Source: Dicyema japonicum
Taxonomy: Eukaryota; Animalia; Dicyemida
NCBI GenBank assembly: GCA_011109175.1
Contig: RDEW01000056.1
Location: 62,001-126,000 of the forward strand
Length of the DNA stretch: 64,000 nt
Direction: 5' to 3'
A program made the translations under genes and the position numbers. The first letter of the stretch is position 1, and each line of letters starts with the position of its first letter. Of this stretch, positions 2,306 through 63,270 are shown piece after piece. The notes under the pieces were generated by a model. The model saw only the letters and a program-made list of their open reading frames with translations. It made no database searches and had not been told where the DNA came from.

Positions 2306-5300
2306 TATTATTATTATAAGCATCATATAAACTATAATTCTATTCGTGCCGCGTCTGAACAATCCTCTTAATTAGCCTTTCCCATCCCCTCCTGTCCGAT
2401 GCCAAGTGCCGCAGACTACTAAGGTCTTCACCGTCCTTTAGTAGTCTGGTTACTGATCTCAGGTCACCATTAAGGACTTCCGGAAGAGTTATTCTTGGAC
2501 GACCTCTGAACTTCTCTCCTGACGTATCGAAGTATTCTTCCATGACGACGTTTGCTGGCGTGTTTTGTACCAATCTGAGAATATGGCCAAACAATCTCCA
2601 GCGAGCCTTCATGATCATGGTGCTCAGAGGTCCGGAACCGCATCTTCTATATAAATTTTCACTCCCTACACGCATTGGCCACTTTAGTCCCAAGAGAGAC
2701 CGAAGTTGCCTTCTGTGAAAGGATTCAAGGTTTTGTTCGTCCGTTTTCGAAATTCCCCACGTCCCAGAGTTGTATGTTAGTATGGGCCTCACGAACGCCT
2801 CATACAACCTGAGTCGGAGTGATGGCCCGACCAAGCATTTTCTTATCCAACATTTCATAAGTTTTTGCATAGTAACCGTAGATAACAATTTTCTTCTTGC
2901 AATGTCTTCGGAGTCTCCGAGAAGAGAGCCAAGCTTTACGGTCTTCCTCCAACATTCACTATTGCGTAGTTCCATCCGCTTAATTTCAACAATATCCGTT
3001 TTCTGAACATTCAGTGATAGACACCATTTGGCCAAACAGCCTGATGCAACCTCCAAGAGACGTAAGAGTGCTTCTTTGTCAGTCGAGATAAAGTCAACAT
3101 CATCGGCATACACGATCTCCATAATATCATTGTTGTAATACTTCCGGAGGTCTTGCAGAGCCGATTCAAGGTATATAGCAAACAATACTGGGGAAAGGGA
3201 ATCTCCTTGGGGTGTGCCCACTGTTGAAATAATTTCCCGTGACAAACATTTTCCAATACGCACTCGTAACCTCGTGTTTGATAAGAGTATCCGTATCAGA
3301 ATAACCGAGTCCTTATCCAGGAAACTTTCAAGCACTTCAATGAGTTTTCCCCGACGGACAGTGTCGAAAGCTCTGGTCAGATCAATTCCAAGGATAGTCT
3401 TTGAGCTCCGGAATCTTTGTTGAATAGCACATTGCCATCTATGGCACCATACTACATCAGCCGTTGATCTCCCTGTCCTAAAACCACTCTGGCTCTGGGC
3501 CAAGTACCCGTCCACCGGCTCTTGGATCCGATTAAGAGTAATTAGGGCAAGGATCTTCCTTAAGGTGTTTAGAAGGATGACAGGGCGCAGGTTTTCAACT
3601 GGCCCAGGGGGTTTATTACCTTTTTGAACTGGTACTAGTATCCCCTTTCCAATTTCTGAAAAGTCCTTGTTTTCTATCATGTCATTCAGCAATTTTGAGA
3701 GTTTATCTGCAAGTTCTGGAGGGCCAAATTTTAGCAATTCAGATGGTATATTATCTGGTCCTGGAGAGCGCCCAGATTTAAGTTTCCTTATCGCCATGCA
3801 AACCTCCTCCGGTGAAATGATCCGTTCAAGTGTTGTGTTCTTAGGCGTGAAATCTGATTTTTCTCCTTTTACAAAGAACAGTTGTTCAATATGCGATGCT
3901 ATGAACTCTGTCTGTTCTGCAACATTTCCTATTGTTTTTCCATTTCTGTCATGCAAAATAAGTTTCACTGATTGGCTCTTCCTCCGTATTAGTCGTATAG
4001 CCATGAATGTCGCAGCATTGTCTTTAAGGTTTTCTACCTCTCTGATCTTGCTTTCCAACTGACTAGTGTGATGTAGTCTGTTTAGGAGTTTGATTTTTCT
4101 CTCAATTTGCCTTCGTTCTTGTTTCAGTTTGCAAACAGTCTGAGGATCGACAGTATTTTCGGATCTAAGCCTTAAGTTCTTCTGCAAATTCAATAGGGCT
4201 GACACTTCCGGGTGACGCTGACTGCTATGGGGTTTAAGTTCCCCCAAATGTTTGTCAGCAGCGGAAATGATCCCTCTCATAGTTTCGAGCCATGCCTTTC
4301 CTGGTGAAAGATCCGATGCCGTATTATTAATTGAATCCGATACACATTCTTTATAGTCTGCTTGTACTTTTGGTGAAGAGCCCAAGAGTTCAGTCATATA
4401 CCTTCTTGATCGCGTGGAATCTCCACCACGATGTGTTTGGAAGAAGCATCTTCTATTAGTTATCCCGTAGAGGAACTCCTCCGCAGTTGGACCAAGTCTT
4501 AAGCTGAATCTTGCTGACACAATTTTGTGATCACTGTTAACAGTTAGTCCTCCATAAGATCTCGAGTCCCGTAAGAGAGATTTGTCTTTTACTCGACACA
4601 GAATATAATCGATCTGATTATAAATCCTTATCAGATTTCCGGTGGTCGATAGTCTAGTGCCCATCCACGTTGTCTTGTGGCGTGCGGAATGTTGGAATTG
4701 AGTATTGCACAGGAATAAATCAAAGGATTCGCAGAAATATGCCAGAGCAGTACCAGAATAGTTCCTGATCCCCCTTCCATGTGGTCCAATAAAACGTTCG
4801 TGTCCTTGATGTACCCCAGCTTTAGCATTCCAATCACCAGCGATAAAGAGGAACGATGAAAACTTCAGAGAAGATACGACCTCGACAAGTTCTTCGTAGA
4901 AAACGTCCAATTCCTCTGGGTTTTTGGAAACACGGCCACTATGTACACGTTCACAATGGAAATTAGTTGCCTGGACTTCCCTTTGGGTCCAATAAGAAAT
5001 TGAATAACACATATCCTGTCATCAATTTTCCAATATCGATGTAATCTGGGGAGCAAATTCTTGTGAACAGCGAAACCCTGTCCATAGTGTTTACAGTACG
5101 ATGGAAGGAGGATTAGTCTGTAGTCTCCAAGGTTTTCATCGAGTCCTTTTCTGAGCTTCGTCTCTTGGAGACAGCAAACAGAGCATCCATATTTTGCAAG
5201 GTCCAGACATAGTTGGTGCCTCTTCGACCAGTCATTAAGGCCCCTGGCATTGAAGGTAAGGGTAGAAAACCAGAAAGGATTATTCAAATACGTATTAGAC

Positions 5301-8112: not shown

Positions 8113-8550
8113 TCAAGCTAATCTTAGAATTAGATGAACTCCAGAAGATGTGAAAACCGGTTTACTCAACTCGTTAGGGGATATGGCGAAAGCGACGTCC
8201 TCAAATTCTTTCTGCATTTGGTCTCTCCCAAAGAAGCCCAGGTCCCCGCCTTTCATGGCTGAAGAACAGTCACTCAATTTGTTGGCTAGATCAGCAAAAG
8301 AAGCCTCATTGGCCATGATTTGTCTCCGGATGTCCTCGATTCGACACAGAGCCTCGCCTTCAGTTATAATCACAGCCCCCGTCCTCCAGGAGTTTGGATT
8401 ACGGGATTTGTTGTGCTTCACAAGAATATGGGAGCAACGGACTTTTTCATTATTCGGGGGATCCCATTGAGACTGCTTGGTGTTCTTATTGTAGTAATAT
8501 GGACGTCCTGTTTTGCTTTCGCACTTAAACCAACCAGCGGGCAATTCCAT
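8113..8550 (-). CDS. PIN1: Pin1/Ess1-type peptidyl-prolyl cis-trans isomerase (WW + parvulin), 145 aa, intronless
   Basis: WW domain (LPAGW...GRPYYYN...SQWDPP); parvulin motifs HILVKH, SDCSSA, GGDLGFF, QMQKEFE, SGVHLI; intact ATG to TGA. Confidence 0.97.
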   Translation of the reverse strand: MELPAGWFKCESKTGRPYYYNKNTKQSQWDPPNNEKVRCSHILVKHNKSRNPNSWRTGAVIITEGEALCRIEDIRRQIMANEASFADLANKLSDCSSAMKGGDLGFFGRDQMQKEFEDVAFAISPNELSKPVFTSSGVHLILRLA

Positions 8551-10579: not shown

Positions 10580-11855
10580 AGAAGATTGATGTAAAAATAT
10601 CAAAAGTGTTGGAAAAGTTGATCCTATCTGAAATTACTCCTCCCATAACTCAACCGAATTTCCAACACGGATTCCGTTCTGGAAGATCAACCACGACTTT
10701 CTTATCAACCCTTTCGCAGTTCATTGTGGATGGTTTCAACACTACCCCAAAACACATACGGACAACAATGGTCTCGATTGACATCAACAAGGCGTTTGAG
10801 TCTGTACCGAGGAAACATTTGATTGGAAAAATCTTTTATTCAAAAATTTGCCCTAATTTGAAGCTATGGCTGGCCAATTTTTTATCTGGATGACGTGGAA
10901 GGGTCATCATTGGCCACCTCAAATCACGTTAACTACCAAACGGAGTACCCCAAGGTTCGCCTTTGTCCCCCACTCTATTCAATTTTTTTATCAACGACCT
11001 GCCATTGACAAGAACTTCCTACTGCTTTCCTATGCTGACGATATCATCATTGCAACAAGAAGCAGTTCGACATCAGAAGCAGTCTCACTCGCACAGAAGA
11101 AAGTGGATTATATCCACGATTGGTTGATAGCTAACCGTCTCTCGGTATCGGCTCCAAAATCATCATGCACTCTATTCACCTCCGACCGGCGGTCCAAAGA
11201 AGAACCAGAAATCTTCATCGGACATACTCGGATACCTGTCACAAGGAACCCCTCAATCCTGGGAGTGACATACGACAGGCTGCTTCATTTTACCTACCAT
11301 GCCAAACAAGTCTTCACCAAAGGACTAAAGAAATTGAATGTCACACGTGCCCTCATCCAGAAGACCCCAGCGAATATGAATAAAGCAATCGGAACCATAT
11401 ACCGCCAGACAATCGCGCCGGCTGTAGAATATGCCTCTGCTGTGTGGAGATTCGCGCTATCAGAGGCCACAATCCAAAAACTAAACTTACTGCCAAGGAA
11501 AACAATACGTATGCTGGGACCACAATGTGGAACAGAAATACCTCCCCTGCTGACGGAATCTACAACTCGTAGATGTGGTTCCGGATTTCTTCGCATTTGC
11601 GTAAAAGATGGACACCCACTAAGCCTCTCACTGTTCCACGCAAAAAATCGGTTGGCTAAGAAATTTCCTTCCCCAATCGCCTTCCTTAATGTATGGATGT
11701 GCATGTTTAATGCATTTGCGAACCCAATGCTAACATATGAGCTGGTACTTGGGCCTGTTCAATTGCCTAATCGATGGCTCTCTATGCGTTTCACAGAAAA
11801 CAGCTTAAAGTGTTATTTGGCATGCAGTGTCCTGGAATTTATAAAAATGTAAGTG
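10580..11855 (+). mobile_element. I/Jockey-like LINE RT and C-terminal region (frameshifted)
   Basis: FQHGFRSGRSTT, IDINKAFESV, SYADDII, ILGVTYDRLLHF, EYASAVW. Confidence 0.85.
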
Positions 11856-12570: not shown

Positions 12571-13126
12571 TCATGCAAATGCATTGTGAGTAAATTTCAC
12601 TGTCACGCTATGTTGTAGTACACAATAGAAGACAAAAATTTCAATTGTCCACATTGATAGTGACTAAAAAGCAAAGGAAAGTGTTTAAGGTGAGATTCTT
12701 CACTTACAGACATCTTGTCTAACAATTTAGTGAATGTGGGATTGGGGTACGATAAAGACATTCATTACTAGAGTAGTGTTAACCAACAAACCTATTTAAT
12801 TTCTCGACCACCTCTAACTCAAAGATCATTCCTTTCTTGTCAGTGTTTTGATACCAAAAAGATCATTTTTTATTTTGGACCGTTTCCTTGTACATGGGAG
12901 CATTCGTATGTTTTGAGATGACCATGAAAATCTAAATTGATAAACATTATTAACATAAAGACTGCACATGCTGTAAGAACATATGGTATATACTTATACT
13001 AATACTTGTTCTATCTTTAATGCCAAAACGATAAATTTAAGGAAAGATCAAAGATTTGTTAACTATGAAGTAGCCAATTACTACATTCTGGGATTTTAGT
13101 CAATTTATAAGCGGAGGATGGCTTAA

Positions 13127-16100
13127 ATGATAATGCTAGGAATTCTATTGTTATTTGCAAGTAATTTTAATCATAATCAAAGTTTGTGATAATTATTCTA
13201 AATATGGAAGACCAGTAAAAACTAAGAAAGAAATATCGACAGCATTTTGTCCGTTGAATACCCATATTTCTAACTGTCGCCCTAAAAATAAATATTATTC
13301 CGACGGATCATATGTTCAGGGTAACTTATGCCAAGTAAGAAGCAATGGAAGAGGAATAACCAATGTAAAGTATTTAATAATAGATAGGCCATCGCCACGT
13401 GTTTACCTATATCTGATTACGTGGTAACGGTATGTAGAAAAATTGCCAACACTGGTATACTCACGTGTCCTAGTGGGACAACTCTGACAGATTGTAGGAT
13501 TCACAACTGGTTGATTCTCTTATTTTAAACTAAGGATGAGTCCATACGATAAATATACGGTTTCAATAAAAGACAATAAATGTGAATTGATATCAAATAA
13601 AAAACAATATGCTGTCACATTTGAGGTCACTTGTCGCAGTATGCCTGTTATCTCAACTTAAAGAATATGCTATTCATAGGAGATTATTGAAAACAAGAAA
13701 ATCAATAGCGCGGATTACCTGTCCACCGAACTATGTTATGAAGGTTTGTAAACTTCTGCAACTTGCAAATCGAGTATCATCATACGTTTCTGGAAACTCG
13801 TGCATTGGAATATATAAACGTCATCGTAAAATATTTTCAGTAAAATTATAAATTGAATCTGTTCTATGCTGAATGTACACTCGACACTCAGGTCGTGGGG
13901 AGACTGGTCAATCAGGCGGAATTAGCGACCAAGAAATACGACTCCTTCGTTTTAGGATGCTCAATACATGTGAGGTTTACTTGGAAATTATCTTTAGGAA
14001 TTATAAAATAAATTATGATGCGATTCTCAAATTATTAGACAAAAATTGTTATTCCAAAGTATCAATTAGGGGAGTAACTGTCCACGGGATTGCAATACGT
14101 ATTTTTGGTTGTAATTCAGTCCCGAAAACTGTTCCGATGATATCTAAAACTCCAAAGAAATGTTCCGCAGGGTATGTTATAAAATATTGCTATTCCGAGA
14201 ACTCGAATGGCTATTATAGTAAAGGATATTGTAAAAGCGACAAAAATAATTATGTTTTTTTATTTCTCAATTTCTAGATTTATATGAGTTGTGAAAATGT
14301 TCGAAATTATTATTTGTCATACAAATGCTTTAAACCAAAACAGAGAACAGCAGTTTACGTTTACGGACAGTGCCCAAATGGTTATACATTGGTGAGCTGC
14401 CTAGCCACAACGTAATTCTTTTACGTTAATTTATAGTCCAGGAAGTGTTAATTTTATATATGTTAACAATCGATGTTATATGTTATCCAGGATACAAATT
14501 GTAGTAATTTGCAAAACAGTAATTATGTATAATATTCAAGCTTACTTATCCAGCAAGTAGTTCAAATACAGCAACATCTACAATTACAACTAATAAAATA
14601 ACAAAAAAACCTGAAACAATTACAACAAACAATCCGACTAAAACAAAAACAACAACTAGATGGAGACCAACAACAACTACCACAATCTATCCAACTACAA
14701 CAACACATAATTCGAGAACAACTACAACACCTAAATTCCGTCCAATAACGACAACAAATACTCCAAGACCTACAACAACAATTACATTTCGTACGACTAC
14801 GACCACAACAACTCCAAGACCAACAACAACCACATTCCGTTCGACTACGACCACAAATACACCAAGACCTACAACAACAACAAATTCCGTCCAACTACGA
14901 CCACAAAGACTCCAAGACAAACAACAACCAAATTCCGTCAACTACGACCACAACTACACAAAGACCGACAGCAACAACCACATTCCGTCCAACTACGACT
15001 ACAACGATTCCAAGACAAACAACAACCACATTCCGTACGACTACGACAACAACTACACCAAGACATACTACAACAACCACATTCCGTCAACTACGACCAC
15101 AACGACTCCAAGACAAACAACAACCAAGTTCTATACGATTACGACCACAACTACACCAAGACCGACAGCAACAACCACATTCCGTCCAACTACGACTACA
15201 ACAACTCCAAGACAAACAACAACCACATTCCGTCCAACTACGACCACAACGACTCCAAGACAAACAACAACCAAGTTCCGTACGATTACGACCATAACTA
15301 CACCAAGACACAACAACCACATTCCGTCCAACTACGACTACAACGACTCCAAGACCAACAACAACCACATTCCGTACGACTACGACCACAACTACTCCAA
15401 GACATACAACAACAACCACATTCCGTCCAACTACGACCACAACGACTCCAAGACAAACAACAACCAGATTCCGTCCAACTACGACCACAACGACTCCAAG
15501 ACAAACAACAACCAAGTTCCGTACGATTACGACCACAACTACACCAAGACCTACAACTACAACCACATTCAGTCCAACTACAACCACAACTACGCCAAGA
15601 CCAACAACAACCACATTCCGTACGACAACGACACAACAACTCAAGACAAACAACAACCACGTTCAGTCCAACTACGACCACAACTACTCCAAGACCTGCA
15701 ACAACAACCGCATTCCGTACGACTACCACCACAACGACTCCAAGACAAACAACAACCAGATTCAGTCCAACTACCACAACGACTCCAAGACAACAACCAA
15801 GTTCCGTACGATTACGACCACAACTACACCAAGACCTACAACTAACCACATTCAGTCCAACTACAACCACAACTACTCCAAGACAACAACAACCACATTC
15901 AGTCCAACTACTCCAAGACCTGCGACAACGACCGCATTCCGTACGACTACGACCACAACAACTCCAAGACTACAACAACAACATTCCGTACAACTACGAT
16001 GACAACTACTCCAAGACCAGCTACAACTACATTCCGTCCTATTGTCACTACAACAACACCAAGATCAGCTACAACAACAACCACAACGATACCGAGACCT

Positions 16101-17574
16101 ACATCAACCATCGTAATTCATCCAGCTACCACCACAACTACACCGAAACCAACATTTACTAAATTCCACCCAACTATTACCACAACCACACCGAGAAGTA
16201 CTACAACTACTGCATTCCGTCCAACTTTCACAAAAACAACACCAAAATCCACTTTAACTAACACATTACCTCCAACAATCACTACTATTTCTGGATATTT
16301 TCCAACTACCCAAAGATATTATACAACCACACAAATAATCCAACTATATTATCCAACCACACAAAATATCATCCAACTACCCAAAAATATTATCCAACCA
16401 CACAAAGATATTATCCAAACTACCCAAAGATATTATCAACTACCCAAAGATATTATCCAACCACCCAAAGATATTATCCTACACACAAAATATTCTCCAC
16501 ACAAAATATCATCCAACTACCTATTAGAACCACACACAAAGATATTATCCAACTACCCAAAGATATTATCCAACCACACAAAGATATTATCCAACCACAC
16601 AAAGATATTCTCCAACCACACAAAATTTTATCCAACACCACAAAGATATATCCAACACACAAAGATATTATCCTACCACACAAAAATTTTTCCAACACCC
16701 AAAGATATTCATCCAACTACCAAAGATATTATCCAACCACACAAAGATTTTATCCAACTACCCAAAGATATTATCCAACCACACAAAGATATTATCCAAC
16801 ACACAAAATATTATCCAACACCACACAAAGATATTCATCCAACTACCCTAAGATATTATTCCAACCACACAAAGATATTATCCAACTACCAAAGATATTA
16901 TCCAACACCAAAGATATTATCCAACCACACAAAATTTTCCAACTACCCAAAGATATCATCCAACTACCCAAAAATATTATCCAACACACAAAGATTATCC
17001 AACTACCCAAAGATATTATACAACACACAAAAATATTATCCCTACCCAAAAATATTATCCAACACACAAAGATATCATCCAACTACCCAAAGATATTATC
17101 CAACCACACAAAGATATTATCCAACTACCCAAAGATATTATCCAACCACCAAAGATATTATCCCTACCCAAAGATATTATCCAACACCCACAAAGATATT
17201 ATCCAACTACCCAAAGATATTATCCAACTACCCTAAGATATTATCCAACTACCCAAAGATATTATCCAACCACACAAAGATATTATCCTACCACACAAAA
17301 ATATTTTCCAACCACACAAAGATATCATCCAACTACCCAAAGATATTATCCAACCACACAAAGATTTTATCCAACTACCCAAAGATATTATCCAACTACC
17401 CAAAGATATTATCCAACTACCCAAAGATATTATCCAACTACCCAAAGATATTATCCAACTACCCAAAGATATTATCCAACTACCCAAAGATATTATCCAA
17501 CTACCCAAAGATATTATCCAATTACCCAAAGATATTATCCAACCACACAAAGATATTTTCAAACTAGAACTTAA
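13127..17574 (+). CDS. Multi-exon gene for a secreted protein: signal peptide, six Cys modules, Thr/Pro mucin repeat, (YPTTQRY)n tail
   Basis: Introns 13161-13182, 13365-13387, 13510-13534, 13639-13663, 13840-13861 (GT-TG), 13975-13997, 14099-14119 (in-frame, uncertain), 14254-14277, 14412-14436 and 14519-14540 give one stop-free frame from MIMLGILLLFAICDNY to LTYPASSSNTATST and into the Thr repeat. The repeat part has frameshifts. The final frame ends PTTQRYFQTRT* at 17574. Confidence 0.85.
14700..16250 (+). repeat. Coding minisatellite, ~51-nt unit (TTTTFRPTTTTTTPRPT-like 17 aa)
   Basis: Repeated ACAACAACCACATTCCGTCCAACTACGACCACAACGACTCCAAGAC; many small indels. Confidence 0.95.
16310..17560 (+). 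repeat. 21-nt tandem array (CCAACTACCCAAAGATATTAT / CCAACCACACAAAGATATTAT), about 55-60 units
   Basis: Directly visible; most homogeneous at 17360-17540. Confidence 0.97.
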
Positions 17575-17796: not shown

Positions 17797-20700
17797 TATT
17801 ATTATTATTATAAAGCACAACGTCTTGCCATTGGAAATGACAAAACCAGTGCAGTACCAAACATTAATTTTTTAGTTAATTTTCTCCACTTTCCACGATC
17901 CTGAGCCAAATCCCTCAAGTAATCCAGGTCATCTCCCGTAGTTAGAGATAATCCTATTCTCTTCAGGTCTTCATTCAGTGTCGTGGCCAGTGATGCTCTC
18001 GGACGTCCTCGGAACTTCACCTCCTCGGTTTGAAAGTATTCCTCCATGGCAACATTAGCTGGAGTTTCGATATTTCCCTGTAGGATGTGTCCAAATAGGC
18101 TCCAACGAAATTCCATGATGTCTAGTGAAATCGGTTTAGAAGACGTAATAGAGTATAGTTCTCGACTTCTTGTTCTCATACGGTCCCAGCACGAATGAAT
18201 TTCCTTAGTTGTCCCCGATGGAAAGAGTTTCGTTTTTCAATGTCATTTAGGGTTAATGACCAAGAACTTGCATTATATAGGAGTATTGGTTTGACTAACG
18301 AATTGTATTGCCGAGTTCTGATCTCTCGATTCAAGCCCTTCTTTCTTAGAAACCAATTTCTTCTCAAGTTGTATAAGGCCGTATTTGCTTTAATCTTCCG
18401 TGCAATGATGTCTTCTTTATCTCCAAGCAGGGATCCCAGCTTTTTAACCTTTCGCCAATGCTCTTCCAGAATAGATTCCTTCCTCATCAAAGTTGTCAGC
18501 TCTGTCTTGTCTTTGTTGATATTTAGTGACCATTTTTCGAATACTCTTGGTGCCGTCTCGAGTAATCCCAATAGGGCCTCCCCATTTTGCGAGACGAAGT
18601 CCACATCATCTGCATAAGCTAGGATGCTAGTTCCCTCCACAATAAAAGGCTTGAGATCCCGTAGCGCAGACTCAAGATATGCAACAAAGAGGAGAGGAGA
18701 CAATGGATCTCCTTGTGGAGTCCCAGTATTTGTCGAAAATGGCATGGCTTGAGTATTTCCAATTTTAACAGTTAGTTGTGTTTCAGCCAGTAGTGCCCTA
18801 ATCATCGAAACTGACGAGGCGTCGAATAGACCCGTGATAGATTCCAATAGTTTACAACGGTTAACTGAATCAAACGCTTTCGATATGTCAATCCCAAGGA
18901 TCCCAAAAGATGTTCTAAATCTTTGAATGGTTGAACATCTCCATTTTAGGCTCCATAAGACGTCTGCCGTTGATCTCCCCTCGCGGAATCCACTATGGTA
19001 TGGTGAAAGATAGGCTTCCAAATTCTCTCTTACACGTTCGAGAGTGATAATAGCCAGGATCTTCCTGATAACATTCATTAGGATGATCGGTCTCAAGTTT
19101 GTTACTTTTCCTTTCGGCTTATTTGGTTTGGGAACCGGAATCAAATAACCCTCTCCAATGGGTAACAACACACGTTCTTCAAACTTTTTATTCATGATCA
19201 ACGCAATGATTTCGTAGAGGTAGTCACCGCCGTGTTTGAATAGTTCAGGACGTAGTCCATCCGGGCCCGCACTTTTATCAGGTTTCAGCCTTTCACATGC
19301 TAATTTCACCTCATAAGGTGCAATTTTCATTCCCAGTTCACCGGATCCACAAACGAATGCCGAAATCACATTCTGAGTCGTATTTAGCCCCGACCTGAAG
19401 TGATCAGTAACCAACTCGGCAATCTCAGATGGGTTCATTATTCGTCTTCCATTTTGGTCGTATAATATAGGGGTACTCTTCTTATTGTGACATTTAAGTA
19501 GCCTAACAGCTTCGTAGTATCCCCTGTTACCCTTTAGCCCTTCCAGGTGCTCTAATTTGTTTAAGGCATCACATCTAGTAGCAGTCCTCACAGCTTTCTT
19601 TATTGACTTATGTATTCTTGCTTTTTCTTTCCTGAGTTCATCTATTGTAAATTTATTCATAGTTTTCTTTTCCTGTATTTGCAGTCGAATTTGCCTCTGC
19701 AGTTTGATTAGATTAGAGATATCTTGACTTGCACTATTCACATTTATCCAGCTTGGAATCTCCATATACATTTCATCATATGTTTTATGCATCGCCATTG
19801 ATACGTTTTTCCATACGTTTAAACATGATTGGTTCGTGTTAATATTCTCCAATTTGTTGGTTATTCGTTTTCTGTATATCTCCTTAATTTGTGGATCTGA
19901 GAAATTAATAGTCTTATTGTAGGCGTATTTTTTGGGTGGGTAGTATATTTGGAGTGTTTGTAATAGCTTACTCGAAATTTCGCAATGACCATCTTATGGT
20001 CAGTGTCAATGGACGAACCTCCGTAAGATCTCGCATTTGTCAATAATCTCTTATCTTTGCATCGACATATTATATAATCGATCTGGTTAAAAATATTTAT
20101 TATTTCTCCGTTATTTTTCTTGGTTGTCCCACACCAAGTCTTCATATGTCTTGCAGCGTGAGCGAATGATGTACGACATAAGAACAAATCGTTTGACCGA
20201 CAGAAGTTTCCTAACAGCGTTCCAGGAAGGTTTCTTTTCCCCCTGCTGAATCTCCCCAAGAACGTTTCGTCGGTATCTGTTCTCCTCCCCACCTTGGCGT
20301 TCATATCACCAGCTATAAATAAAAGTGCGGAGTCGGCCAATTCTAAATATAAATCTGAGTAGAAGTCATCAAATAGAGCCGGATCTTTGTTAATCCAACC
20401 ACTGTGAGGTGCGTATACATTGATAATGGAGACAATGTCAGTGCTTGCTTTGGTATTCATAAACTTCATTTGTAGAACTCCGTTGCGGTCATTAACTGCC
20501 CATACTCTGTAGATATGGGGGAGAAATTCCATTTTGATGGCAAAACCCAGTCCATAGTGCCTGTTGACAGTCGGAAGAAAGATCAATTTGAATTTACCAC
20601 ATGTTTCTTCGTGGTTATCTTGGATTTTGGTTTCCTGTAGGCAACCGATTGCGACATCGTAATTATGTAGGTCTTGACAGAGGGAGGTCCTTTTCCAAGA

Positions 20701-20817
20701 AGAGGTTAGGCCTCGGACGTTGAATGAGAGCAGCGAGAATTTCTCCAAAAGATAAGGTTCGTACTTTTCAGATATGTTAATACTTTCTTAGAACCACGTC
20801 ACCAGCTCAACCAAAAC
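17797..20817 (-). mobile_element. Full-length RTE-clade LINE (second family, ~3.0 kb) with 10-bp TSD and (TAA)n tail; ORF broken
   Basis: TSD GGTTGGTTAT at 17787-17796 and 20818-20827; (TTA)n at ~17793-17811; ORF pieces 19861-20748 (APE), 18176-19852 (RT: GTPQGDPLSP, YADD) and 17808-18179. Confidence 0.92.
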
Positions 20818-32386: not shown

Positions 32387-35018
32387 TACGACAACCAACA
32401 CAACAAGTATAAGACGAACACAACAACAACATTCCGTACGAATACGACAAATATCACATTCAGTCCAACTACGACCAAAACAACTCTAAGATCAACAACA
32501 ACCAAATTCAGTTGAACGACGAGCACAACTATTTCAAGACCAACGACAACAACCACATTCATTCCAAATTCGAACACAAATACACCAAAACCAACTACAA
32601 CAACCACATTCAGTCAATCTATGAGCACAACAACACCAAGATCATAAAAAACTCATACGGTCCAACTACGAACACAACTATTACAAGATCAAAGACAACT
32701 ACCACATTCTGTCCAACTAAGAAGACAACTATTCAAAGACCAACGACAACAACCACATTCATTCAAAATTCGAACACAAATACTCCAAGACTATAGACAA
32801 CAACTACATTCCGTTTAACTACGACAACAACGAGTCAAAGACATACTGCAAAACAACCGCATTTCCTAATACTACGACCAATTTACAAAGACCACAATAA
32901 CCACATTTAGTCCAACTACGACCAAAACAACTCCAAGATTAACAACAACCACATTCAGTCCAACTACGAACACAACTATTCCAAGACCAACGACAACAAC
33001 CACATTCAGTCCAACGAAAAACACAACTATTCCAAGACCAACGACTACAACCTCATTCCGTCCTTCTATAAACAACTACTCCAAAACCAACAACAACCAC
33101 ATTCAGTACAACTACGAACACAAATATTTCAAGAACAAAGACAAAAAACACATTAATTCCAAATTCGAACATAATACTCGAAGACTATCAACAACAACTA
33201 CATTCCGTTGAACAACGAACACAACTATTTCAAGATTAACGACAACAACCACATTCATTCCTATTTCGAATACAAATACTCGAAGACTATCGACAACAAC
33301 CACATTTAGTCCAACGAAAAACACAACTATTCCAAGATCAACGACAACAACCACATTCTGTCCAACTATGAAGACAACTATTCCAAGACCAACGACAACA
33401 ACCACATTCAGTCCATTTAAGAGCACAACCACTCCAAGATCATCAAAAAACTCATTCAGTCCACTATGAACACAAATATTCCGAGACCAAAGACAAATAC
33501 CACATTCAGTCCATCTACTACCAAAACAACTCTAAGATCAACAACAACCAATTTCAGTTGAACAACGAACACAACTATTTCAAGACCAACGACAACAACG
33601 ACATTACTTTTAACTACGACAACAACGAGTCGAACACCTACTGCATAACAACCGCATTTCCTAATACTATGACCAATTTACAAAGACCACAATAACCACA
33701 TTTATCGAACTAGAACCACTACAACCCAAGACCAACAACAAAAACATTCTGTCCAACTAAGAACACAACTATTCCAAGACCAACGACAACAACCAGATTC
33801 AGTCGAACTACGAACACAACTATTTCAAGAACAAAGACAAATACCACATTCATTTAAAATTCGAACACAAATTCTCAAAGACTATAGACAACAACTACAT
33901 TCCGTTAAACAACGAACACAACTATTTCAAGACCAACGACAAATACCGCAATCATTTCAAATTCGAACACAAATACTCCAAGACTATCGACAACAACTAC
34001 ATTCTGTTTAACTACGAAAACAACGAGTCAAAGACCTACTGCAACAACCGCATTTAGTGCAACTACGACCACAACAACTTTAAGACCAACAACCACATTC
34101 AGTTTAACTTCTAACACAACTATTCCAAACCATCGACAACAACCACAATCAGTCCAACTAAGAACACAAGTATTCCAAGAACAACGACAACAACCACATT
34201 CAGTCCATCTATGAGTACAACTACTCCAAAACAAACAACAACCACATTCAGTCCAACTTCGAACACAACTATTCCAAACCATCAACAACTACCACATTCA
34301 GTCCAACTAAGAACACAACTATTCCAAGAACAACGACAAAAACCACATTCAGTCCATCTATGAGTACCACTACTACAAAACCAACAACAACCAGATTCAG
34401 TCCAACTACGAACACAACTATTTCAAGAACAAAGACAAATACCACATTCATTCCAAATTCGAACACAAATACTCCAAGAAATCTCAACAACTACATTCCG
34501 TTGAACAACGAAATCAATATTTCAAGACCAACGACAATAAACACATTCAGTCCAAATTCGACTCAAATACTCAAGACTATCGACAACAACTACTTTTCGT
34601 TTAACTACGACAACAACGAGTCAAAGACCTACTGCAACAACCGCATTTCCTAATACTACGACCAATTTACAAAGACCACAAAACCACATTTAATGCATCT
34701 ACAACCACAAAAACTCAAAGACTAACAACAACCACATTCAGTCCAACTACGAAAAAAACTATTTCAAGAACAAAGACAAATACCACATTCATTCTAAATT
34801 CGAACACAAATACTCCAAGAAATCTCAACAACTACATTCCGTTGAACAACGAAAGCAATATTTCAAGACCAACGACAATAAACACATTCAGTCCAAATTC
34901 GACTCAAATACTCCAAGACTATCGACAACAACTACTTTTCGTTTAACTACGACAACAACGAGTCAAAGACCTACTGCAACAACCGCATTTCCTAATACTA
35001 CGACCAATTTACAAAGAC
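32387..35018 (+). repeat. Second Thr-rich mucin-like coding minisatellite (~51-nt unit, TTTTFSPTTNTTIPRPT-like), no upstream exons
   Basis: Repeated ACAACAACCACATTCAGTCCAACTACGAACACAACTATTCCAAGAC with higher-order blocks; many frameshifts and stops. Confidence 0.9.
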
Positions 35019-35609
35019 CGAACTTTCGCTACTCTGTAATGCCAAGTGATGATTATTCCAGTGGTTTTGACATAAGATGGAGTAATCTCAAGATGCTTCA
35101 AGAATCATATGCATAAATTATCTATTAAAGAATCAACGAGGATATACACCCAATCTGTTGTGCTGAAGAGATCGCTAGAAAGTATGCTCATTGAACATGA
35201 GCATGAAATGAAGGTATACGATGAAGAGTACGCCTCTGCTATTTCCCAACTTGTAGAACTGGCATGTCGTGAGAACAGCTCACTGGATTCTAACAGAGAT
35301 ATTTCGACTGAATCTGAGGTGGAGATGGGAAGTAACAAAAAGTTTATGGCACACTATTCTTCTAAAAGAAGAAGAAGGATTAGCAGCAATCTGGATTAAA
35401 ATTTGCTTAATTAGTTAATTTACTTGTTAATATTATTATAGAAATAGAAAATAACGATAAAAATGGCAAATTCAAGAAAGTTTCTGTATGTAATATTCAA
35501 CTCTGAAATAAATAAATTATTCATCGCTGATAAATTATTCATCACAGATATAAATAAATTATTCATCGTTAATAAAAAGTAAAATTCACATGGGTATTTG
35601 ACATATCAG

Positions 35610-36487
35610 CAAAAAATCAATTTCTTGCTTTGTTTGACCGTTATTTATATATTGTTGTTCACGATTGATGTAAAGAGTTTATAATATTTAGACGAATGAC
35701 AGAGCTTACAACAAAGACATCTTATTAGTCAGTGGATACTATAATGGGGGGTTTCGTAGACCTCAAGAGTATTTTATGTGGATGAAAAAATTTGCCTTTA
35801 TTGAAACCCATCTTGTATTTTTCTCAGACGACAAGAAAATCCTCAGATATATGGGCAAGATTAGAAAAAATCTTCCTACCACTTTAATTAACCTAAACAG
35901 GTCAGAATTGATTGGGTTTAAAAAAATTGAAGAAATAAAGCATATTTTAACACTTCCTGGATTTGGGTTGCATTTTAAAGAAACTGGAAATTATAACTAC
36001 TCCGCCGTCACGAATTCCAAACACGATATTTCGAAAAGAGCAATCGTAATGTTCTCCCATAATTTCTCATACGTCGCCTGGGTTGATGTCGGTCTTTTCC
36101 GCAACGTGAAAACTACAAAAATGTATAAACTGAAAAAAAACAAAATACGTGTACGATACACGTATCACTATGAGTCAAGTAAAAAAATATGAAGAATATC
36201 CTATCGAAAATGTCATAAAAAATGCAAGAGTTTGGGTATCTGGAGCTGTATTTATAGGTCCTGTTGACCTAATGTACAAATTATGTGATAATTACGAAAA
36301 GTTTTTTCTTAAATTGTTATCTTTGAAACTGATGGCGACTGACGAACAAGTACTATTCTCAATGTACACACTCGAAGGAATCGGACTTTTGGATAATAAA
36401 ATAAGACTGAGCCTCTATCAATGCAATTATTATCCAATTTACACGCTTCTAACAAACGTGAAATCATCTGATCATTGTTACACTTAG
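35610..36487 (+). CDS. HtrL/YibB-like protein with N-terminal membrane anchor; 22-nt intron 35670-35691; frameshift in A8 run near 36135; 5' end unresolved
   Basis: FLLCLTVIYILLFTI anchor; ILLVSGYY...EYFMWMKKF, HLVFFSDD, YVAWVDVGLFR, WVSGAVFIG and TDEQVLF resemble recalled HtrL/YibB-family motifs. Confidence 0.7.
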
Positions 36488-60699: not shown

Positions 60700-63270
60700 G
60701 AAACTCTATACACATGAAAGTCGGTGTAAGAGAAGGAGAGAAAATAATCTGGTTGAGTTTAATCGCAGATTGTTTTACCGTCGCCTACACGAAAATGGCC
60801 ATAGTGTATGTTCCCAGCAGGACGCGGAAATTCTTTCCACATGGGGTAGTATGTGGGAGGCTAAACCACGCAGAGGAAATGCGTGGAATGTCCCGTACAG
60901 CGCCGCTCCTTTCTTGGCGGAATCTTGCGGAATTTTCGATTTTCACAAGAAATTTGAGGCGGTAGTGAGACATCTCCCTGATTGGAAAACGACCGGGGTC
61001 GATAAAGTTTATAATTTCTTTATCAAAAGATGCACTTCATTACACGAGTCTATGTGTCGTGTATTACAGAAAAGCGTCACTAACCCGGAAACGATTCCTG
61101 ATTGGGCATGCACAGGGACAACTTATTTGATCCCAAAGCTGGACAACCCCCAGTCTGCTGCAGATTATCGACCGATAACCTGCATGCCAACCCTGTATAA
61201 GCTGATGACCAAATTGGTGGCTAATGAGGTCAGGAGCTTTGTAGACGCAAATGGGATTCTCTCCGAGAATCAGTTGGGAACTGTGCGAAATTGTCAGGGG
61301 GCAAAAGAGCAGGCTTTGATCAACAAATGCCTTTCTGTGTCTCACGGAAACTCACTTTTGTCTATGTGGGTGGATGTGAAGAAGGCTTACGATTCAGTTG
61401 ATCATTCTTACCTTGTCGAGTGCCTACACAGTCTGTGTATGCCTGTGTGGTTCATCAGCTTTGTAGTGGCTGTGATGAATAGGTGGAGTATTCATCTGAA
61501 CTATAATAGGCACCGGATAGGCGAGGTAAAACTCAAGAGGGGGATCCTTCAGGGGATAGCATGTCTCCGCTACTCTTTGTTCTCTGTTTGGAGCCATTGA
61601 GTCGCCGCCTCAATGACCGGTTTGAGCAAATACCAGTTCATTGTGAAGGGGTTGTTTCAGTACAAATCACTTCTTTTTATCGATGACTTGAAGATGTATG
61701 CTCGAACAGCCGAGGAGCTCTACTCCATGGGGGTCTGTGCCAGGGAATTCTTTGAGAGTATAGGCTAGATTTGAATTATTCAAAGTCTGCGACTAACACG
61801 CAAGTATGTAGCGAGTTAGTAAGAGTCCTAGAGGAACACGAAGGATATAAGTATCTGGGTGTTACCGAATCTCCAAAGTCCCTTATAATGCCTGAGACAA
61901 AGCGACAAATTACTGAAGGCATCCGTAAAAGAGCAGCGTTATTGTGTAAGACGTCTCTAAATGCAAGGAATTTGTTCCTAGCATTAAATGAGTATGCTGT
62001 CTCGCTGCTAAACTACTACATAGGTGTTGTGGAGTTTGAGCCCAAAGAGTATGATGAGATGGATGTTATGATCCGTGGAGTACTCAGAGAGAACCATGTC
62101 CATGTGTTGGCAGCCAATAAGGAGAGACTATATTTACCCCGTGATAAATTCGGCCGTGGACTGTGTGGAGTAGTCCAACTAAGTGAGCGTATCCTAATGC
62201 GAATGCACGACACCCTGATAGCTGGGTCAAGTGTGTCTGCTAGGAAGCACGCCATAATAACGACCGAGAAAACACGGGCAACCCACCTAGGCACTATCAG
62301 ACCTTTTTTGTCTGCTAAGTATGGTGTTGATGATGGTGGGCTAGTAAATGTGAAGGCGTTGATCGAATTACAATATAATAATTTGATGGAAAAGATCAAC
62401 TTAAAAAGCCTTCATAAGGTCCTCTTCAGAGCATTGGACAACCCACATGTCGACCTTAAGTCGTCGACAATATGGCTAAAATACGGTGACAACTCACCTC
62501 GATCGGAGGCGTTGTACACGTATATGCAAGACCGCAATATTTTTTGGGGTCGATCAACAAATACATGTCCCCACTGTAAGTCAAGGAGCATGTCGGTTGA
62601 TCATTTAGCCACTCGATGTGGATCCATGCTCTGCCACGACTATGTGTGGAGGCATAACGAGGTAGTAAGGAGTCTTCATCTTCTACTATGCAATAAGTAT
62701 GGTATTCGCCACACCAGAAAGTTGCGGACTCATAAGGTGCAATCTGTAGTAGAGAACACCAGGTTCTAAATTAAGGTAGACAGTGTTATCCGTACCTCGG
62801 TGCTAATCAAGCACAATAAACCGGACATTGTGGTACACGATAAGGAGTCTGGCCAAGTCCTTATCATAGAGTTGGCATCACGTCTCAAGACCGTTTGCAG
62901 ACTGTGGAGGTGGAGAAAAAAAGGAAGTATGACTTTCTTGCAAACGAGATGGGGCAGATTAGTTGCAAAGTCCTCATTATTCCTATAGTAATGACGTGGG
63001 AAGGAATTGCATCAAAGTACCACAAGGGTTATCTGAAGCAGTTAGGGGTAGATAGGAAGCTCCAGGCCTATCTACAGTCCACTGTGTTAAAGCGGACCCT
63101 AGAGAGCTTGACACTGGAGTATAGGAGGAAGAGCCCTGAGATGCCATACGGGCAGAGGGTTCAATTTGACAATGCGCTCTCGGAGTTGTTTCAGCAACCA
63201 GAATCGAACCTGCCTGAGGAGGCGGCGAACAGGCAGACGAGGATGGTTGTTGATTAATAAATATATTAAC
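60700..63270 (+). mobile_element. R4/Dong-like RLE LINE, RT to 3' end, few frameshifts
   Basis: ORF pieces 60770-61600, 61771-62769 and 62800-63257; CQGAKEQALIN, WVDVKKAYDSVDH, LFIDDLK; CPHC...HLATRC; RHNEVV; NKPDIV; EKKRKY. Confidence 0.92.

Follow-up and report, generated by a model that had tools for sequence, protein, structure and literature searches.

The locus at 13127–17574 raises the question of whether a multi-exon gene with micro-introns lies hidden in this DNA, as the original prediction held. Within the window, by which we mean the whole 64,000-nt stretch of Dicyema japonicum DNA that was analysed, threading of the frame through candidate introns, homology of the encoded modules and periodic placement of the introns all agree that it does; the gene is real in outline, and its splicing is predicted. 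Reading from the DNA alone, we consider it probable that this is a native protein-coding gene with ultra-short introns, whose product consists of a cysteine-rich head, a stalk and a tail.

Gene model and its introns

The model joins ten exons from the ATG at 13127, which is preceded immediately by an in-frame TAA, and predicts nine micro-introns of 22–25 nt (eight GT..AG, one GT..TG); the earlier count of ten introns of 21–25 nt is thus revised, and one of the nine does not end in AG. The single continuous frame claimed for the spliced sequence extends through the head, which comprises 402 codons without a stop, 26 cysteines and six modules, but is not maintained through the repeats that follow, where it switches about 10 times in one array and about 28 times in the other. 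The predicted features are as follows.

13127–13160, plus strand: exon 1, with the start codon and a hydrophobic N-terminus, a putative short signal peptide (upstream in-frame TAA; hydropathy)
13161–13182, plus strand: intron 1, 22 nt, GT..AG
13183–13364, plus strand: exon 2, module 1 as far as its last strand (match to P0002; alignment to 20 PCSK9_C-like modules)
13365–13387, plus strand: intron 2, 23 nt, GT..AG, phase 0, four codons 5′ of the last Cys of module 1
13388–13509, plus strand: exon 3, last part of module 1, then the hairpin of module 2
13510–13534, plus strand: intron 3, 25 nt, GT..AG, phase 2, five codons 3′ of the hairpin Cys of module 2
13535–13638, plus strand: exon 4, remainder of module 2
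13639–13663, plus strand: intron 4, 25 nt, GT..AG
13664–13839, plus strand: exon 5, module 3 as far as its last strand
13840–13861, plus strand: intron 5, 22 nt, with the non-canonical ends GT..TG, phase 0, four codons 5′ of the last Cys of module 3
13862–13974, plus strand: exon 6, last part of module 3, then the degenerate start of module 4
13975–13997, plus strand: intron 6, 23 nt, GT..AG, phase 2, five codons 3′ of the hairpin Cys, matching intron 3
13998–14253, plus strand: exon 7, remainder of module 4 and module 5 as far as its last strand
14254–14277, plus strand: intron 7, 24 nt, GT..AG, phase 0, four codons 5′ of the last Cys of module 5, with an in-frame TAG inside
14278–14411, plus strand: exon 8, last part of module 5, then the hairpin of module 6
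14412–14436, plus strand: intron 8, 25 nt, GT..AG, phase 2, four codons 3′ of the hairpin Cys
14437–14518, plus strand: exon 9, remainder of module 6
14519–14540, plus strand: intron 9, 22 nt, GT..AG, linking the head in frame to a Ser/Thr-rich region
14541–16345, plus strand: first part of exon 10, Ser/Thr linker, Thr/Pro array and a less regular Thr/Pro bridge (TRF, composition, substitutions)
16346–17574, plus strand: second part of exon 10, about 60 copies of a 21-nt YYPTTQR unit, then YFQTRT and TAA (TRF, substitutions)

Two copies of CACGTG lie within exon 3. The window also contains ORFs for LINE reverse transcriptase/endonuclease, and its ORFs are translated with the standard code; on these grounds a ciliate source for the DNA was rejected.

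The predicted introns have a GC content of 0.22, compared to 0.34 for the exons, and each of the nine would break the frame if retained. In most of them a run of A precedes the AG. Apart from the one TG, they agree with the published description of introns of ~20–30 nt that begin with GT and end with A residues followed by AG; among animals, introns this small are known in D. japonicum and in myxobolids only (PMC13644364). In a threading test that allowed at most 10 introns of 21–25 nt, with 300 shuffles and 300 other places in the window as controls, the real sequence could be threaded over 1434 nt, while none of the shuffles could (best 773 nt).

AT-rich DNA could in principle supply eight GT..AG pairs by chance, and six of the 300 other places within the window could also be threaded. 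It might thus be proposed that frame-restoring GT..AG segments were simply picked by eye from non-coding AT-rich sequence; however, we find this hardly credible in view of the failure of all 300 shuffles, the homology of the head to a PCSK9_C-module protein in a whole-database search with six modules in register (see below), the periodic positions of the introns, and paralogue changes that are biased towards synonymous sites and keep the cysteines. Introns 2, 5 and 7 are all in phase 0 and lie four codons before the last cysteine of modules 1, 3 and 5, while introns 3, 6 and 8 are in phase 2 and lie four to five codons past the hairpin cysteine of modules 2, 4 and 6. Position and phase therefore repeat every second module, which is what genuine introns duplicated together with their exons should show, and it was a triplicated two-module unit that gave rise to the six modules.

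The TG end of intron 5 is confirmed by the Illumina contigs, and there is no path through this region that uses only AG ends with introns of 18–32 nt. A canonical 52-nt alternative ending in AG (13840–13891) is less likely, since it would remove the conserved last strand and cysteine of module 3.

The Illumina contig comparison, drawn from four DNA libraries of 2019 that fit those described with the published assembly (PMC6736024), covered 12900–14660 and revealed one segment with paralogues; no spliced joints were seen in these DNA reads, and a fifth run, tentatively labelled DNA, contained none of the words sampled from the locus.

13064–13922, plus strand: segment with further, ~8% diverged copies elsewhere in the genome (variant Illumina contigs)

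The variant contigs are present at about twice single-copy depth and have loose ends at 13064 and 13922. A Nextera junction adaptor was found in one loose end of the Illumina contigs. The exon variants listed include 15 synonymous changes and 21 that are not; within exon 2 the paralogue differs by six synonymous changes and one non-synonymous change, and both cysteine codons are kept. In the paralogue of intron 4 two bases are altered right before the AG, but the AG itself is kept. Three differences from the Illumina contigs are seen at full depth, namely a missing A at 13053 and substitutions at 14172 and 14555, which may be either allelic or erroneous.

The N-terminus is hydrophobic (MIMLGILLLFAI; 9-residue Kyte-Doolittle mean ~3.0 over residues 1–13). 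This leader is merely 11–12 residues long, lacks a charged n-region and stands right before the conserved first cysteine of module 1 (residue 13). As had been noted from the sequence, no transmembrane segment is seen: the head has no hydrophobic segment past the N-terminus (best 19-residue Kyte-Doolittle mean 1.35), and the C-terminus of the protein, ...YFQTRT, carries no membrane anchor.

Kinship of the cysteine modules

The head does contain six modules of the pattern that had been described (C-P/S-x-G/N-Y/T-x(3)-C, then C, then A/V/I-x-x-C), the fourth being degenerate and lacking the first hairpin cysteine. In a search of 1.84 billion proteins exon 2 alone matched P0002 (E 1.8e-4), a protein in which Pfam identifies PCSK9_C3 (6e-27) and PCSK9_C1 (5e-21), and the alignment to P0004/P0002 continues across the junction of intron 2. 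A family profile was derived from P0002 and its relatives (25 modules), with the window sequence excluded. It gave six matches, one per head module, in tandem and in register (residues 27–79, 96–135, 162–201, 232–276, 298–316 and 358–375), with module 5 sub-significant at -0.6 bits; its score on the head was 26.5 bits, compared to a best of 12.1 among 2000 shuffles. Profile-profile comparison with hhalign gave a probability of 94% (E 1.4e-7). The proposed resemblance to PCSK9 C-terminal and resistin-like modules is thus borne out by the exon 2 match, the family profile and hhalign.

In the joint alignment of exon 2 with 20 PCSK9_C-like modules, columns C2, C3 and C4 are common to exon 2 and all 20 family modules, C1 to nearly all, and a DG column is likewise shared. 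Searched against the PDB, the profile of this alignment, in which 20 of the 21 rows are modules of the bridging family, found PCSK9 as its sole match (1.7e-18). Superposed on residues 458–518 of PCSK9, the AF2 model of exon 2 fits with 2.0 A over 55 residues.

More direct searches with window sequence gave little. Foldseek with the exon 2 model returned no significant match, Pfam on eight exon pieces only noise (HTH_74, a CC domain at 0.005, FinO_N), a window-only profile of three pieces nothing in the PDB, phmmer of exon 8 against the PDB only antibody noise, and exon 7 drew no candidate in a word-indexed protein search. P0001 and P0003, found in the representative search, were rejected as low-complexity or repeat matches without Pfam support. 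A literature search for PCSK9_C-type domains in invertebrates or dicyemids found nothing relevant.

Each PCSK9 module is built on a framework of six cysteines forming three disulfides, with a terminal CC doublet. Here C2-C3-C4-C5 are kept in five of the six modules, the first cysteine in module 1 and perhaps module 5 only, and the CC doublet in none, which speaks against the assignment; on paper, all 26 cysteines of the head can be paired. Sequence comparison places the head modules in kinship with the PCSK9 C-terminal (CHRD)/resistin-like module, indirectly, via the bridging family.

Repeat arrays and the broken frame

Both of the repeats attributed to this gene are present. The Thr/Pro array occupies 14664–16039 with a period of 48/99 nt (TRF) and a unit of 16–17 residues (TTTTFRPTTTTTTPRP); its in-frame pieces contain 43–48% Thr and 12–13% Pro, and the Thr/Pro-rich repeat region as a whole amounts to ~580 residues. 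The Tyr-rich tail is encoded by a 21-nt array at 16346–17566 (TRF) with about 60 YYPTTQR heptads. Over its final 130 codons the frame is unbroken, with a composition of Y 25%, T 27%, P 14% and R 14%, and a TAA at 17572–17574 closes the YYPTTQR frame right at the end of the array. Searches with the tail found no homologue, and Atlas gave generic repeat proteins only. Micro-introns within the Thr/Pro units were also considered and rejected: the GT..AG pairs there are 28 nt apart and GC-rich, and would leave exons of 20 nt.

It is possible that the coding sequence stops at the head, intron 9 being unused, and that the arrays are adjoining non-coding minisatellite. If intron 9 is kept, a stop follows 13 codons later, just past module 6, and a similar Thr/Pro array lies at 32444–34989 without a head (tblastn found no second head copy within the window). 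In addition, the 21-mer is by composition free of stops in all three frames, so that an open frame there proves nothing. However, intron 9 resembles the other eight (22 nt, GTAA...AAG, GC 0.18) and joins the head to exon 10 in frame, and the proper stop of the YYPTTQR frame falls exactly where the array ends. Of the substitutions between repeat copies, 64 of 124 in the Thr/Pro array fall on third positions of the TTTTFRP... frame, and in the tail the ratio of synonymous to non-synonymous changes is 47:28 in the YYPTTQR frame, compared to 8–13:62–67 in the other two. As this third-position bias is confined to the TTTTFRP... and YYPTTQR frames, we take both arrays to have evolved as coding DNA, and we regard a gene consisting of the head alone as very unlikely.

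A gene extending through both arrays, the reading we prefer, has to account for the state of its frame. As assembled, the Thr/Pro frame is left after ~110 codons of exon 10, with a stop near 15840; composition and period fit a long Pro/Thr/Ser tandem repeat, but it is not in a single open frame. Switches of the Thr-rich frame fall within 14877–15957, those of the Tyr-rich frame within 16359–17181. No break is found in the opening 330 nt of exon 10, in the 400-nt bridge or in the last 390 nt. The published assembly is a merger of Illumina and PacBio RS II assemblies (PMC6736024), and avoidance of the stretches beside unique sequence leads us to lean towards errors of long-read assembly; uncorrected long-read indel errors are more likely than real lesions as the source of the ~40 frame breaks.

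Were the lesions real, this would be a recently dead or dying copy, with an intact head, a lost intron 5 acceptor and ~40 genuine frameshifts in the arrays, giving no full-length protein. The TG at intron 5, present in the Illumina contigs as well, would fit such a copy, as would the switches and the stop in the assembly and the ratio of frameshifting indels to substitutions in the Thr/Pro array (~1:10), which is in keeping with neutral decay. Partial paralogues exist, and the array at 32444–34989 is clearly decayed, with in-frame stops, so such arrays do decay here. Yet the nine head exons stay open and in frame over 402 codons, their introns retain all nine GT donors as well as eight AG acceptors, and the breaks shun the parts near unique anchors. 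In the Tyr array, moreover, indels outnumber non-synonymous substitutions (42, of which 34 are deletions, against 28) and are mostly 1-nt deletions, unlike neutral decay. We therefore consider a dying copy the less likely state of this gene, although it is an alternative to be taken seriously. The frames of tandem-repeat genes are broken in this assembly, and accurate long reads are needed before any such gene is called dead or alive.

Comparison with known proteins and possible role

The closest likeness is to the PCSK9 CHRD (Pfam PCSK9_C1/C2/C3) and the globular domain of resistin/RELM, which are likewise made of small cysteine-rich modules, in tandem. Shared features are the hairpin C-P/x-x-G-x-x-L-x-x-C, the D-G after it, the cysteine of the next strand and the last strand A-x-A-x-C. 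Here, however, there are six modules and not three, there is no protease domain, a single cysteine replaces the terminal CC doublet, and the modules sit on a mucin-like stalk. The nearest sequences, all with PCSK9_C modules, are P0002, P0004 and P0005 (a JGI sample and ENA assemblies) and the snail GH10 xylanases P0006 and P0007. In these sequences a multi-module PCSK9_C array comes after a signal peptide, as it would here, and module 1 of the head shows 30–38% identity to them over ~47 residues; unlike the protein predicted here, P0002 ends with a membrane-spanning segment and the snail proteins bear a glycoside hydrolase, while neither the Thr/Pro array nor the Tyr-rich heptad tail occurs in any of the five. 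The architecture had been described as unrecognised, and so it remains after the searches with exon 7, exon 2 (1.84 billion proteins) and the tail.

In its leader, its cysteine-rich end domain and its long Thr/Pro tandem repeat the predicted protein is similar to secreted mucin-like glycoproteins with PTS repeats, although it has no VWD, CK or SEA domains and its glycosylation is conjectural. The repeats lie in one large exon, in contrast to the one micro-exon per repeat of micro-intron mucin-like genes. Mussel foot protein 1 consists of the decapeptide AKPSYPPTYK, in which Tyr is converted to DOPA (PMC6282983). Like the tail, it is made of short units repeated in tandem dozens of times, with an abundance of Tyr, Pro, Thr and a basic residue. 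The unit here is a heptad with Gln/Arg, whereas that of the mussel is a decapeptide with Lys, and no sequence kinship was found between them; the resemblance is one of functional analogy only, and DOPA or dityrosine here would be pure conjecture.

We propose that the protein may be secreted. Its cysteine modules could form an extracellular binding head, perhaps lectin-like or adhesive as first proposed, a reading suggested by the protein contacts that such modules mediate in PCSK9 and resistin; the Thr/Pro part would be an extended O-glycosylated stalk, and the Tyr/Arg-rich tail might adhere to, or be cross-linked into, a surface or matrix. The whole would then serve the parasite as a glycoprotein of its coat or matrix, or as one used for attachment. 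A more specific proposal is that this is a dicyemid-specific attachment or coat protein, whose head binds a ligand of the host (cephalopod kidney) or of the parasite and whose glycosylated stalk bears an oxidatively cross-linkable tail, from a PCSK9-module family that has expanded in the parasite and with one micro-intron spliced at TG; in this full form we think it unlikely.

The published D. japonicum annotation reportedly contains only ~5,000 genes, and ORF-based views miss micro-intron genes of this kind. The locus adds a candidate GT..TG micro-intron and a clean case of introns copied with a two-module unit. The PCSK9-CHRD/resistin module is best known from vertebrate metabolism; here a highly reduced invertebrate parasite uses it to head a putative mucin-like secreted protein, which is a candidate for the host-parasite interface.

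Gene model, micro-introns and partial copies

The gene opens with an ATG at 13127 (plus strand), preceded by an in-frame TAA just upstream. A frame-keeping path search restricted to AG acceptors found four clean GT..AG introns and then stalled at 13851; permitting a TG acceptor and using module homology gave the model listed below. The original prediction had claimed ten introns of 21-25 nt, a figure corrected by the frame-keeping path and module homology to nine of 22-25 nt, with intron 5 being GT..TG.

Predicted introns of the gene
13161-13182, plus strand: intron 1, 22 nt, GT..AG
13365-13387, plus strand: intron 2, 23 nt, GT..AG
13510-13534, plus strand: intron 3, 25 nt, GT..AG
13639-13663, plus strand: intron 4, 25 nt, GT..AG
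13840-13861, plus strand: intron 5, 22 nt, GT..TG
13975-13997, plus strand: intron 6, 23 nt, GT..AG
14254-14277, plus strand: intron 7, 24 nt, GT..AG
14412-14436, plus strand: intron 8, 25 nt, GT..AG
14519-14540, plus strand: intron 9, 22 nt, GT..AG

These introns have a GC content of 0.22 compared to 0.34 in the exons; retention of any one would shift the frame, except for intron 7, which would introduce an in-frame stop. After splicing, the cysteine-rich head (exons 1-9) comprises 402 stop-free codons. Threading with up to ten introns of 21-25 nt traversed the full 1434 nt of the real sequence, whereas none of 300 shuffles succeeded under the same rules, the best reaching 773 nt. Among animals, introns this tiny are reported only in Dicyema japonicum and myxobolid myxozoans (PMC13644364). 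Four sequencing runs of 2019 contain this DNA, all from a single sample (one larger library and small ones), and a Nextera junction adaptor is visible in a loose contig end of one of them; this is consistent with the paired-end and Nextera mate-pair libraries described for D. japonicum (PMC6736024), the probable source. Judging from sequence, we regard this predicted micro-intron gene, hidden until now, as real.

The strongest internal evidence for real introns is their periodicity. Introns 2, 5 and 7 share phase 0 and precede the last Cys of modules 1, 3 and 5, respectively, by exactly four codons (junctions N/AIATC, S/FYAEC and Y/IYMSC, with the slash marking the splice). Introns 3, 6 and 8 share phase 2 and follow the second hairpin Cys of modules 2, 4 and 6 at a distance of five codons, five codons and four codons. 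The recurrence of both positions and phases therefore indicates that the head is a triplicated two-module unit which carried its introns along.

Intron 5 must end in TG rather than AG if module 3 is to retain its conserved last strand. Illumina contigs across this intron carry TG and differ from the window solely at 14172 and 14555; the TG is thus not an assembly slip, since the covering contigs agree there. At full depth, all four Illumina libraries depart from the window at three sites: they have one more A following 13053 and two synonymous substitutions, G>A at 14172 and A>G at 14555. These represent either assembly errors or another allele.

Over 13064-13922 the Illumina contigs exist in two versions: one matches the window without any difference at a depth of about 400, and the other has diverged by about 8% and is about twice as deep, with sharp divergence and loose contig ends at both borders. 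It follows from the two versions and the loose ends that a part beginning 60 nt upstream of the gene and extending through exon 6 has further genomic copies. The PCSK9-type module family seems to have expanded in this genome. Among the 40 of 90 paralogue differences listed, 15 of 36 exon differences are synonymous (6 synonymous vs 1 non-synonymous in exon 2), and replacements are clustered in one loop of module 2. Both Cys codons of exon 2 have changed from TGT to TGC in the paralogue, and intron 4 has kept its AG with two adjoining bases changed. As a sequence pattern, these changes point to selection acting on the exons.

Identity of the cysteine-rich modules

Exon 2 (13183-13364, 60 residues), searched against 1.84 billion representative proteins, returned three matches; two were rejected as repeat noise, which leaves P0002 (E 1.8e-4). 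This protein of 626 residues runs from a signal peptide through six modules to a membrane segment, and Pfam recognises PCSK9_C3 (6e-27) and PCSK9_C1 (5e-21) in it. It is encoded by one complete ORF (123-2003) on the 2.1-kb contig L001 (JGI sample 3300017282), which suggests that arrays of PCSK9_C modules have a wider distribution outside vertebrates than the family name implies. P0002 has few relatives: two proteins derived from assemblies, and GH10 xylanases of snails in which Pfam finds the same modules.

A profile built solely from 25 modules of these five bridging proteins matched the spliced head six times, once per module and in register, the match to module 5 being weak (-0.6 bits). In total it scored 26.5 bits, whereas the best of 2000 shuffles scored 12.1 and the reversed sequence 0.2. 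When the six head modules were compared with the family profile to profile, the probability was 94% (E 1.4e-7). Pairwise family alignments span splice junction 2 without a break, and this junction is therefore supported. The first Cys, both hairpin Cys, a DG and the next Cys are common to exon 2 and the family in the joint alignment, whose profile (20 of its 21 rows being bridging-family modules) matched only PCSK9 in the PDB (1.7e-18, residues 456-527). The original recognition of PCSK9 C-terminal/resistin-like modules is thus supported by the exon 2, profile, profile-profile and PDB matches, the link from window to PCSK9 being, at the level of sequence, transitive via the bridging family.

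Pfam on the exon pieces, phmmer with exon 8 and a profile from three window pieces alone each gave no match, and Foldseek gave no significant match with a folded exon 2 model (module 1 minus its last strand, pLDDT 71). In contrast to the PCSK9 modules, none of the six head modules ends in the CC doublet, and module 4 is without one hairpin Cys. We regard the head as an array of diverged modules that belong to an already known family.

Repeat arrays and their frame breaks

Tandem arrays of exon 10 (TRF)
14664-16039, plus strand: Thr/Pro array, 48/99-nt period, 6-7% indels
16346-17566, plus strand: Tyr-rich array, 21-nt period, 6-7% indels

Repeat copies were aligned to their own consensus, and the resulting substitution counts are not independent events. 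Third positions account for 64 of 124 substitutions in the TTTTFRPTTTTTTPRP frame of the Thr/Pro array and 48 of 75 in the YYPTTQR frame of the 21-nt array; in the latter frame 47 are synonymous vs 28 non-synonymous, compared to 8-13 vs 62-67 in the other frames, and two common 21-mer variants encode an identical peptide. The third-position bias therefore indicates that both arrays evolved as coding sequence, in exactly the frames originally proposed. The YYPTTQR frame closes with YFQTRT and TAA (17572-17574). The single continuous frame of the original prediction does not hold, however: as assembled, there are about 10 switches of the Thr-rich frame and about 28 of the Tyr-rich one, and the naive frame from exon 10 meets a stop near 15840. 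A 522-codon ORF is uninformative because the 21-mer is open in all three frames by composition.

A second Thr/Pro array at 32444-34989, on the gene's strand, is more degenerate (51-nt unit, 68% matches) and is not preceded by a Cys head; it resembles what is left of a related gene after decay. On its 3' side, at about 35120-35400, lies a stop-free, coding-like, Glu/Ser-rich piece in another frame.

The frame breaks could reflect real decay of the arrays: in the Thr/Pro array the ratio of frameshifting indels to substitutions is about 1:10, as expected under neutrality; its sister array, which lacks a head and carries in-frame stops, has plainly decayed; and intron 5 is without AG. However, no breaks fall within the first 330 nt of exon 10, the irregular bridge of 400 nt or the last 390 nt, which are the parts reachable by short reads anchored in unique sequence. 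In the Tyr array, 42 indels (34 of them deletions, mostly of one base) against 28 non-synonymous substitutions is far from the usual neutral ratio and favours errors. The published assembly, merged from Illumina and PacBio RS II assemblies (PMC6736024), also counts in that direction, and we lean, with some reserve, towards assembly errors as the source of the breaks.

Genomic surroundings and proposed function

The window is animal-type DNA with many LINE-like elements that have reverse transcriptase ORFs; in one case there is also an AP-endonuclease ORF. One element follows immediately 3' of the gene on the other strand.

Neighbouring features in the window
2340-5012, minus strand: LINE-like element
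8113-8550, minus strand: intronless Pin1-type ORF, 145 residues; WW domain (E 1e-13), PPIC rotamase (2e-21)
10866-11852, plus strand: LINE-like element
18176-20748, minus strand: LINE-like element
60770-62769 (ORF 60770-61600), plus strand: LINE-like element

Two overlapping ORFs at 35776-36487 (plus strand) look like parts of a single gene that a frame change or micro-intron interrupts, with a weak, sub-threshold Pfam hint of HtrL_YibB (E 0.06). CACGTG occurs 17 times in the window vs 6.8 expected, a count that none of 100 shuffles attained, including two sites in exon 3 (13396, 13462) and three around the Pin1-like ORF.

The predicted gene product has a hydrophobic start, six modules like those of the PCSK9 C-terminal Cys/His-rich domain (CHRD), a Thr/Pro domain in which 43-48% of residues are Thr, and a tail of Tyr/Thr/Pro/Arg/Gln heptads. 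We could not find this whole architecture elsewhere in the searches made; database searches found no relatives of the tail, and we found no literature on a PCSK9-type domain in invertebrates or dicyemids. As originally predicted, there is no sign of a membrane segment or anchor, the head being without a further hydrophobic segment and the protein end not anchor-like. Modules of PCSK9 and resistin mediate protein contacts. By analogy, the protein may be secreted, with the CHRD-like modules as a binding head and the Thr/Pro part as an O-glycosylated stalk. The heptad tail may be adhesive or cross-linkable, after mussel foot protein 1, in which Tyr of the Tyr/Pro/Thr/Lys decapeptide repeats is oxidised to DOPA (PMC6282983). 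The gene is of moderate interest, both for the question of TG acceptors and for parasite surface biology.
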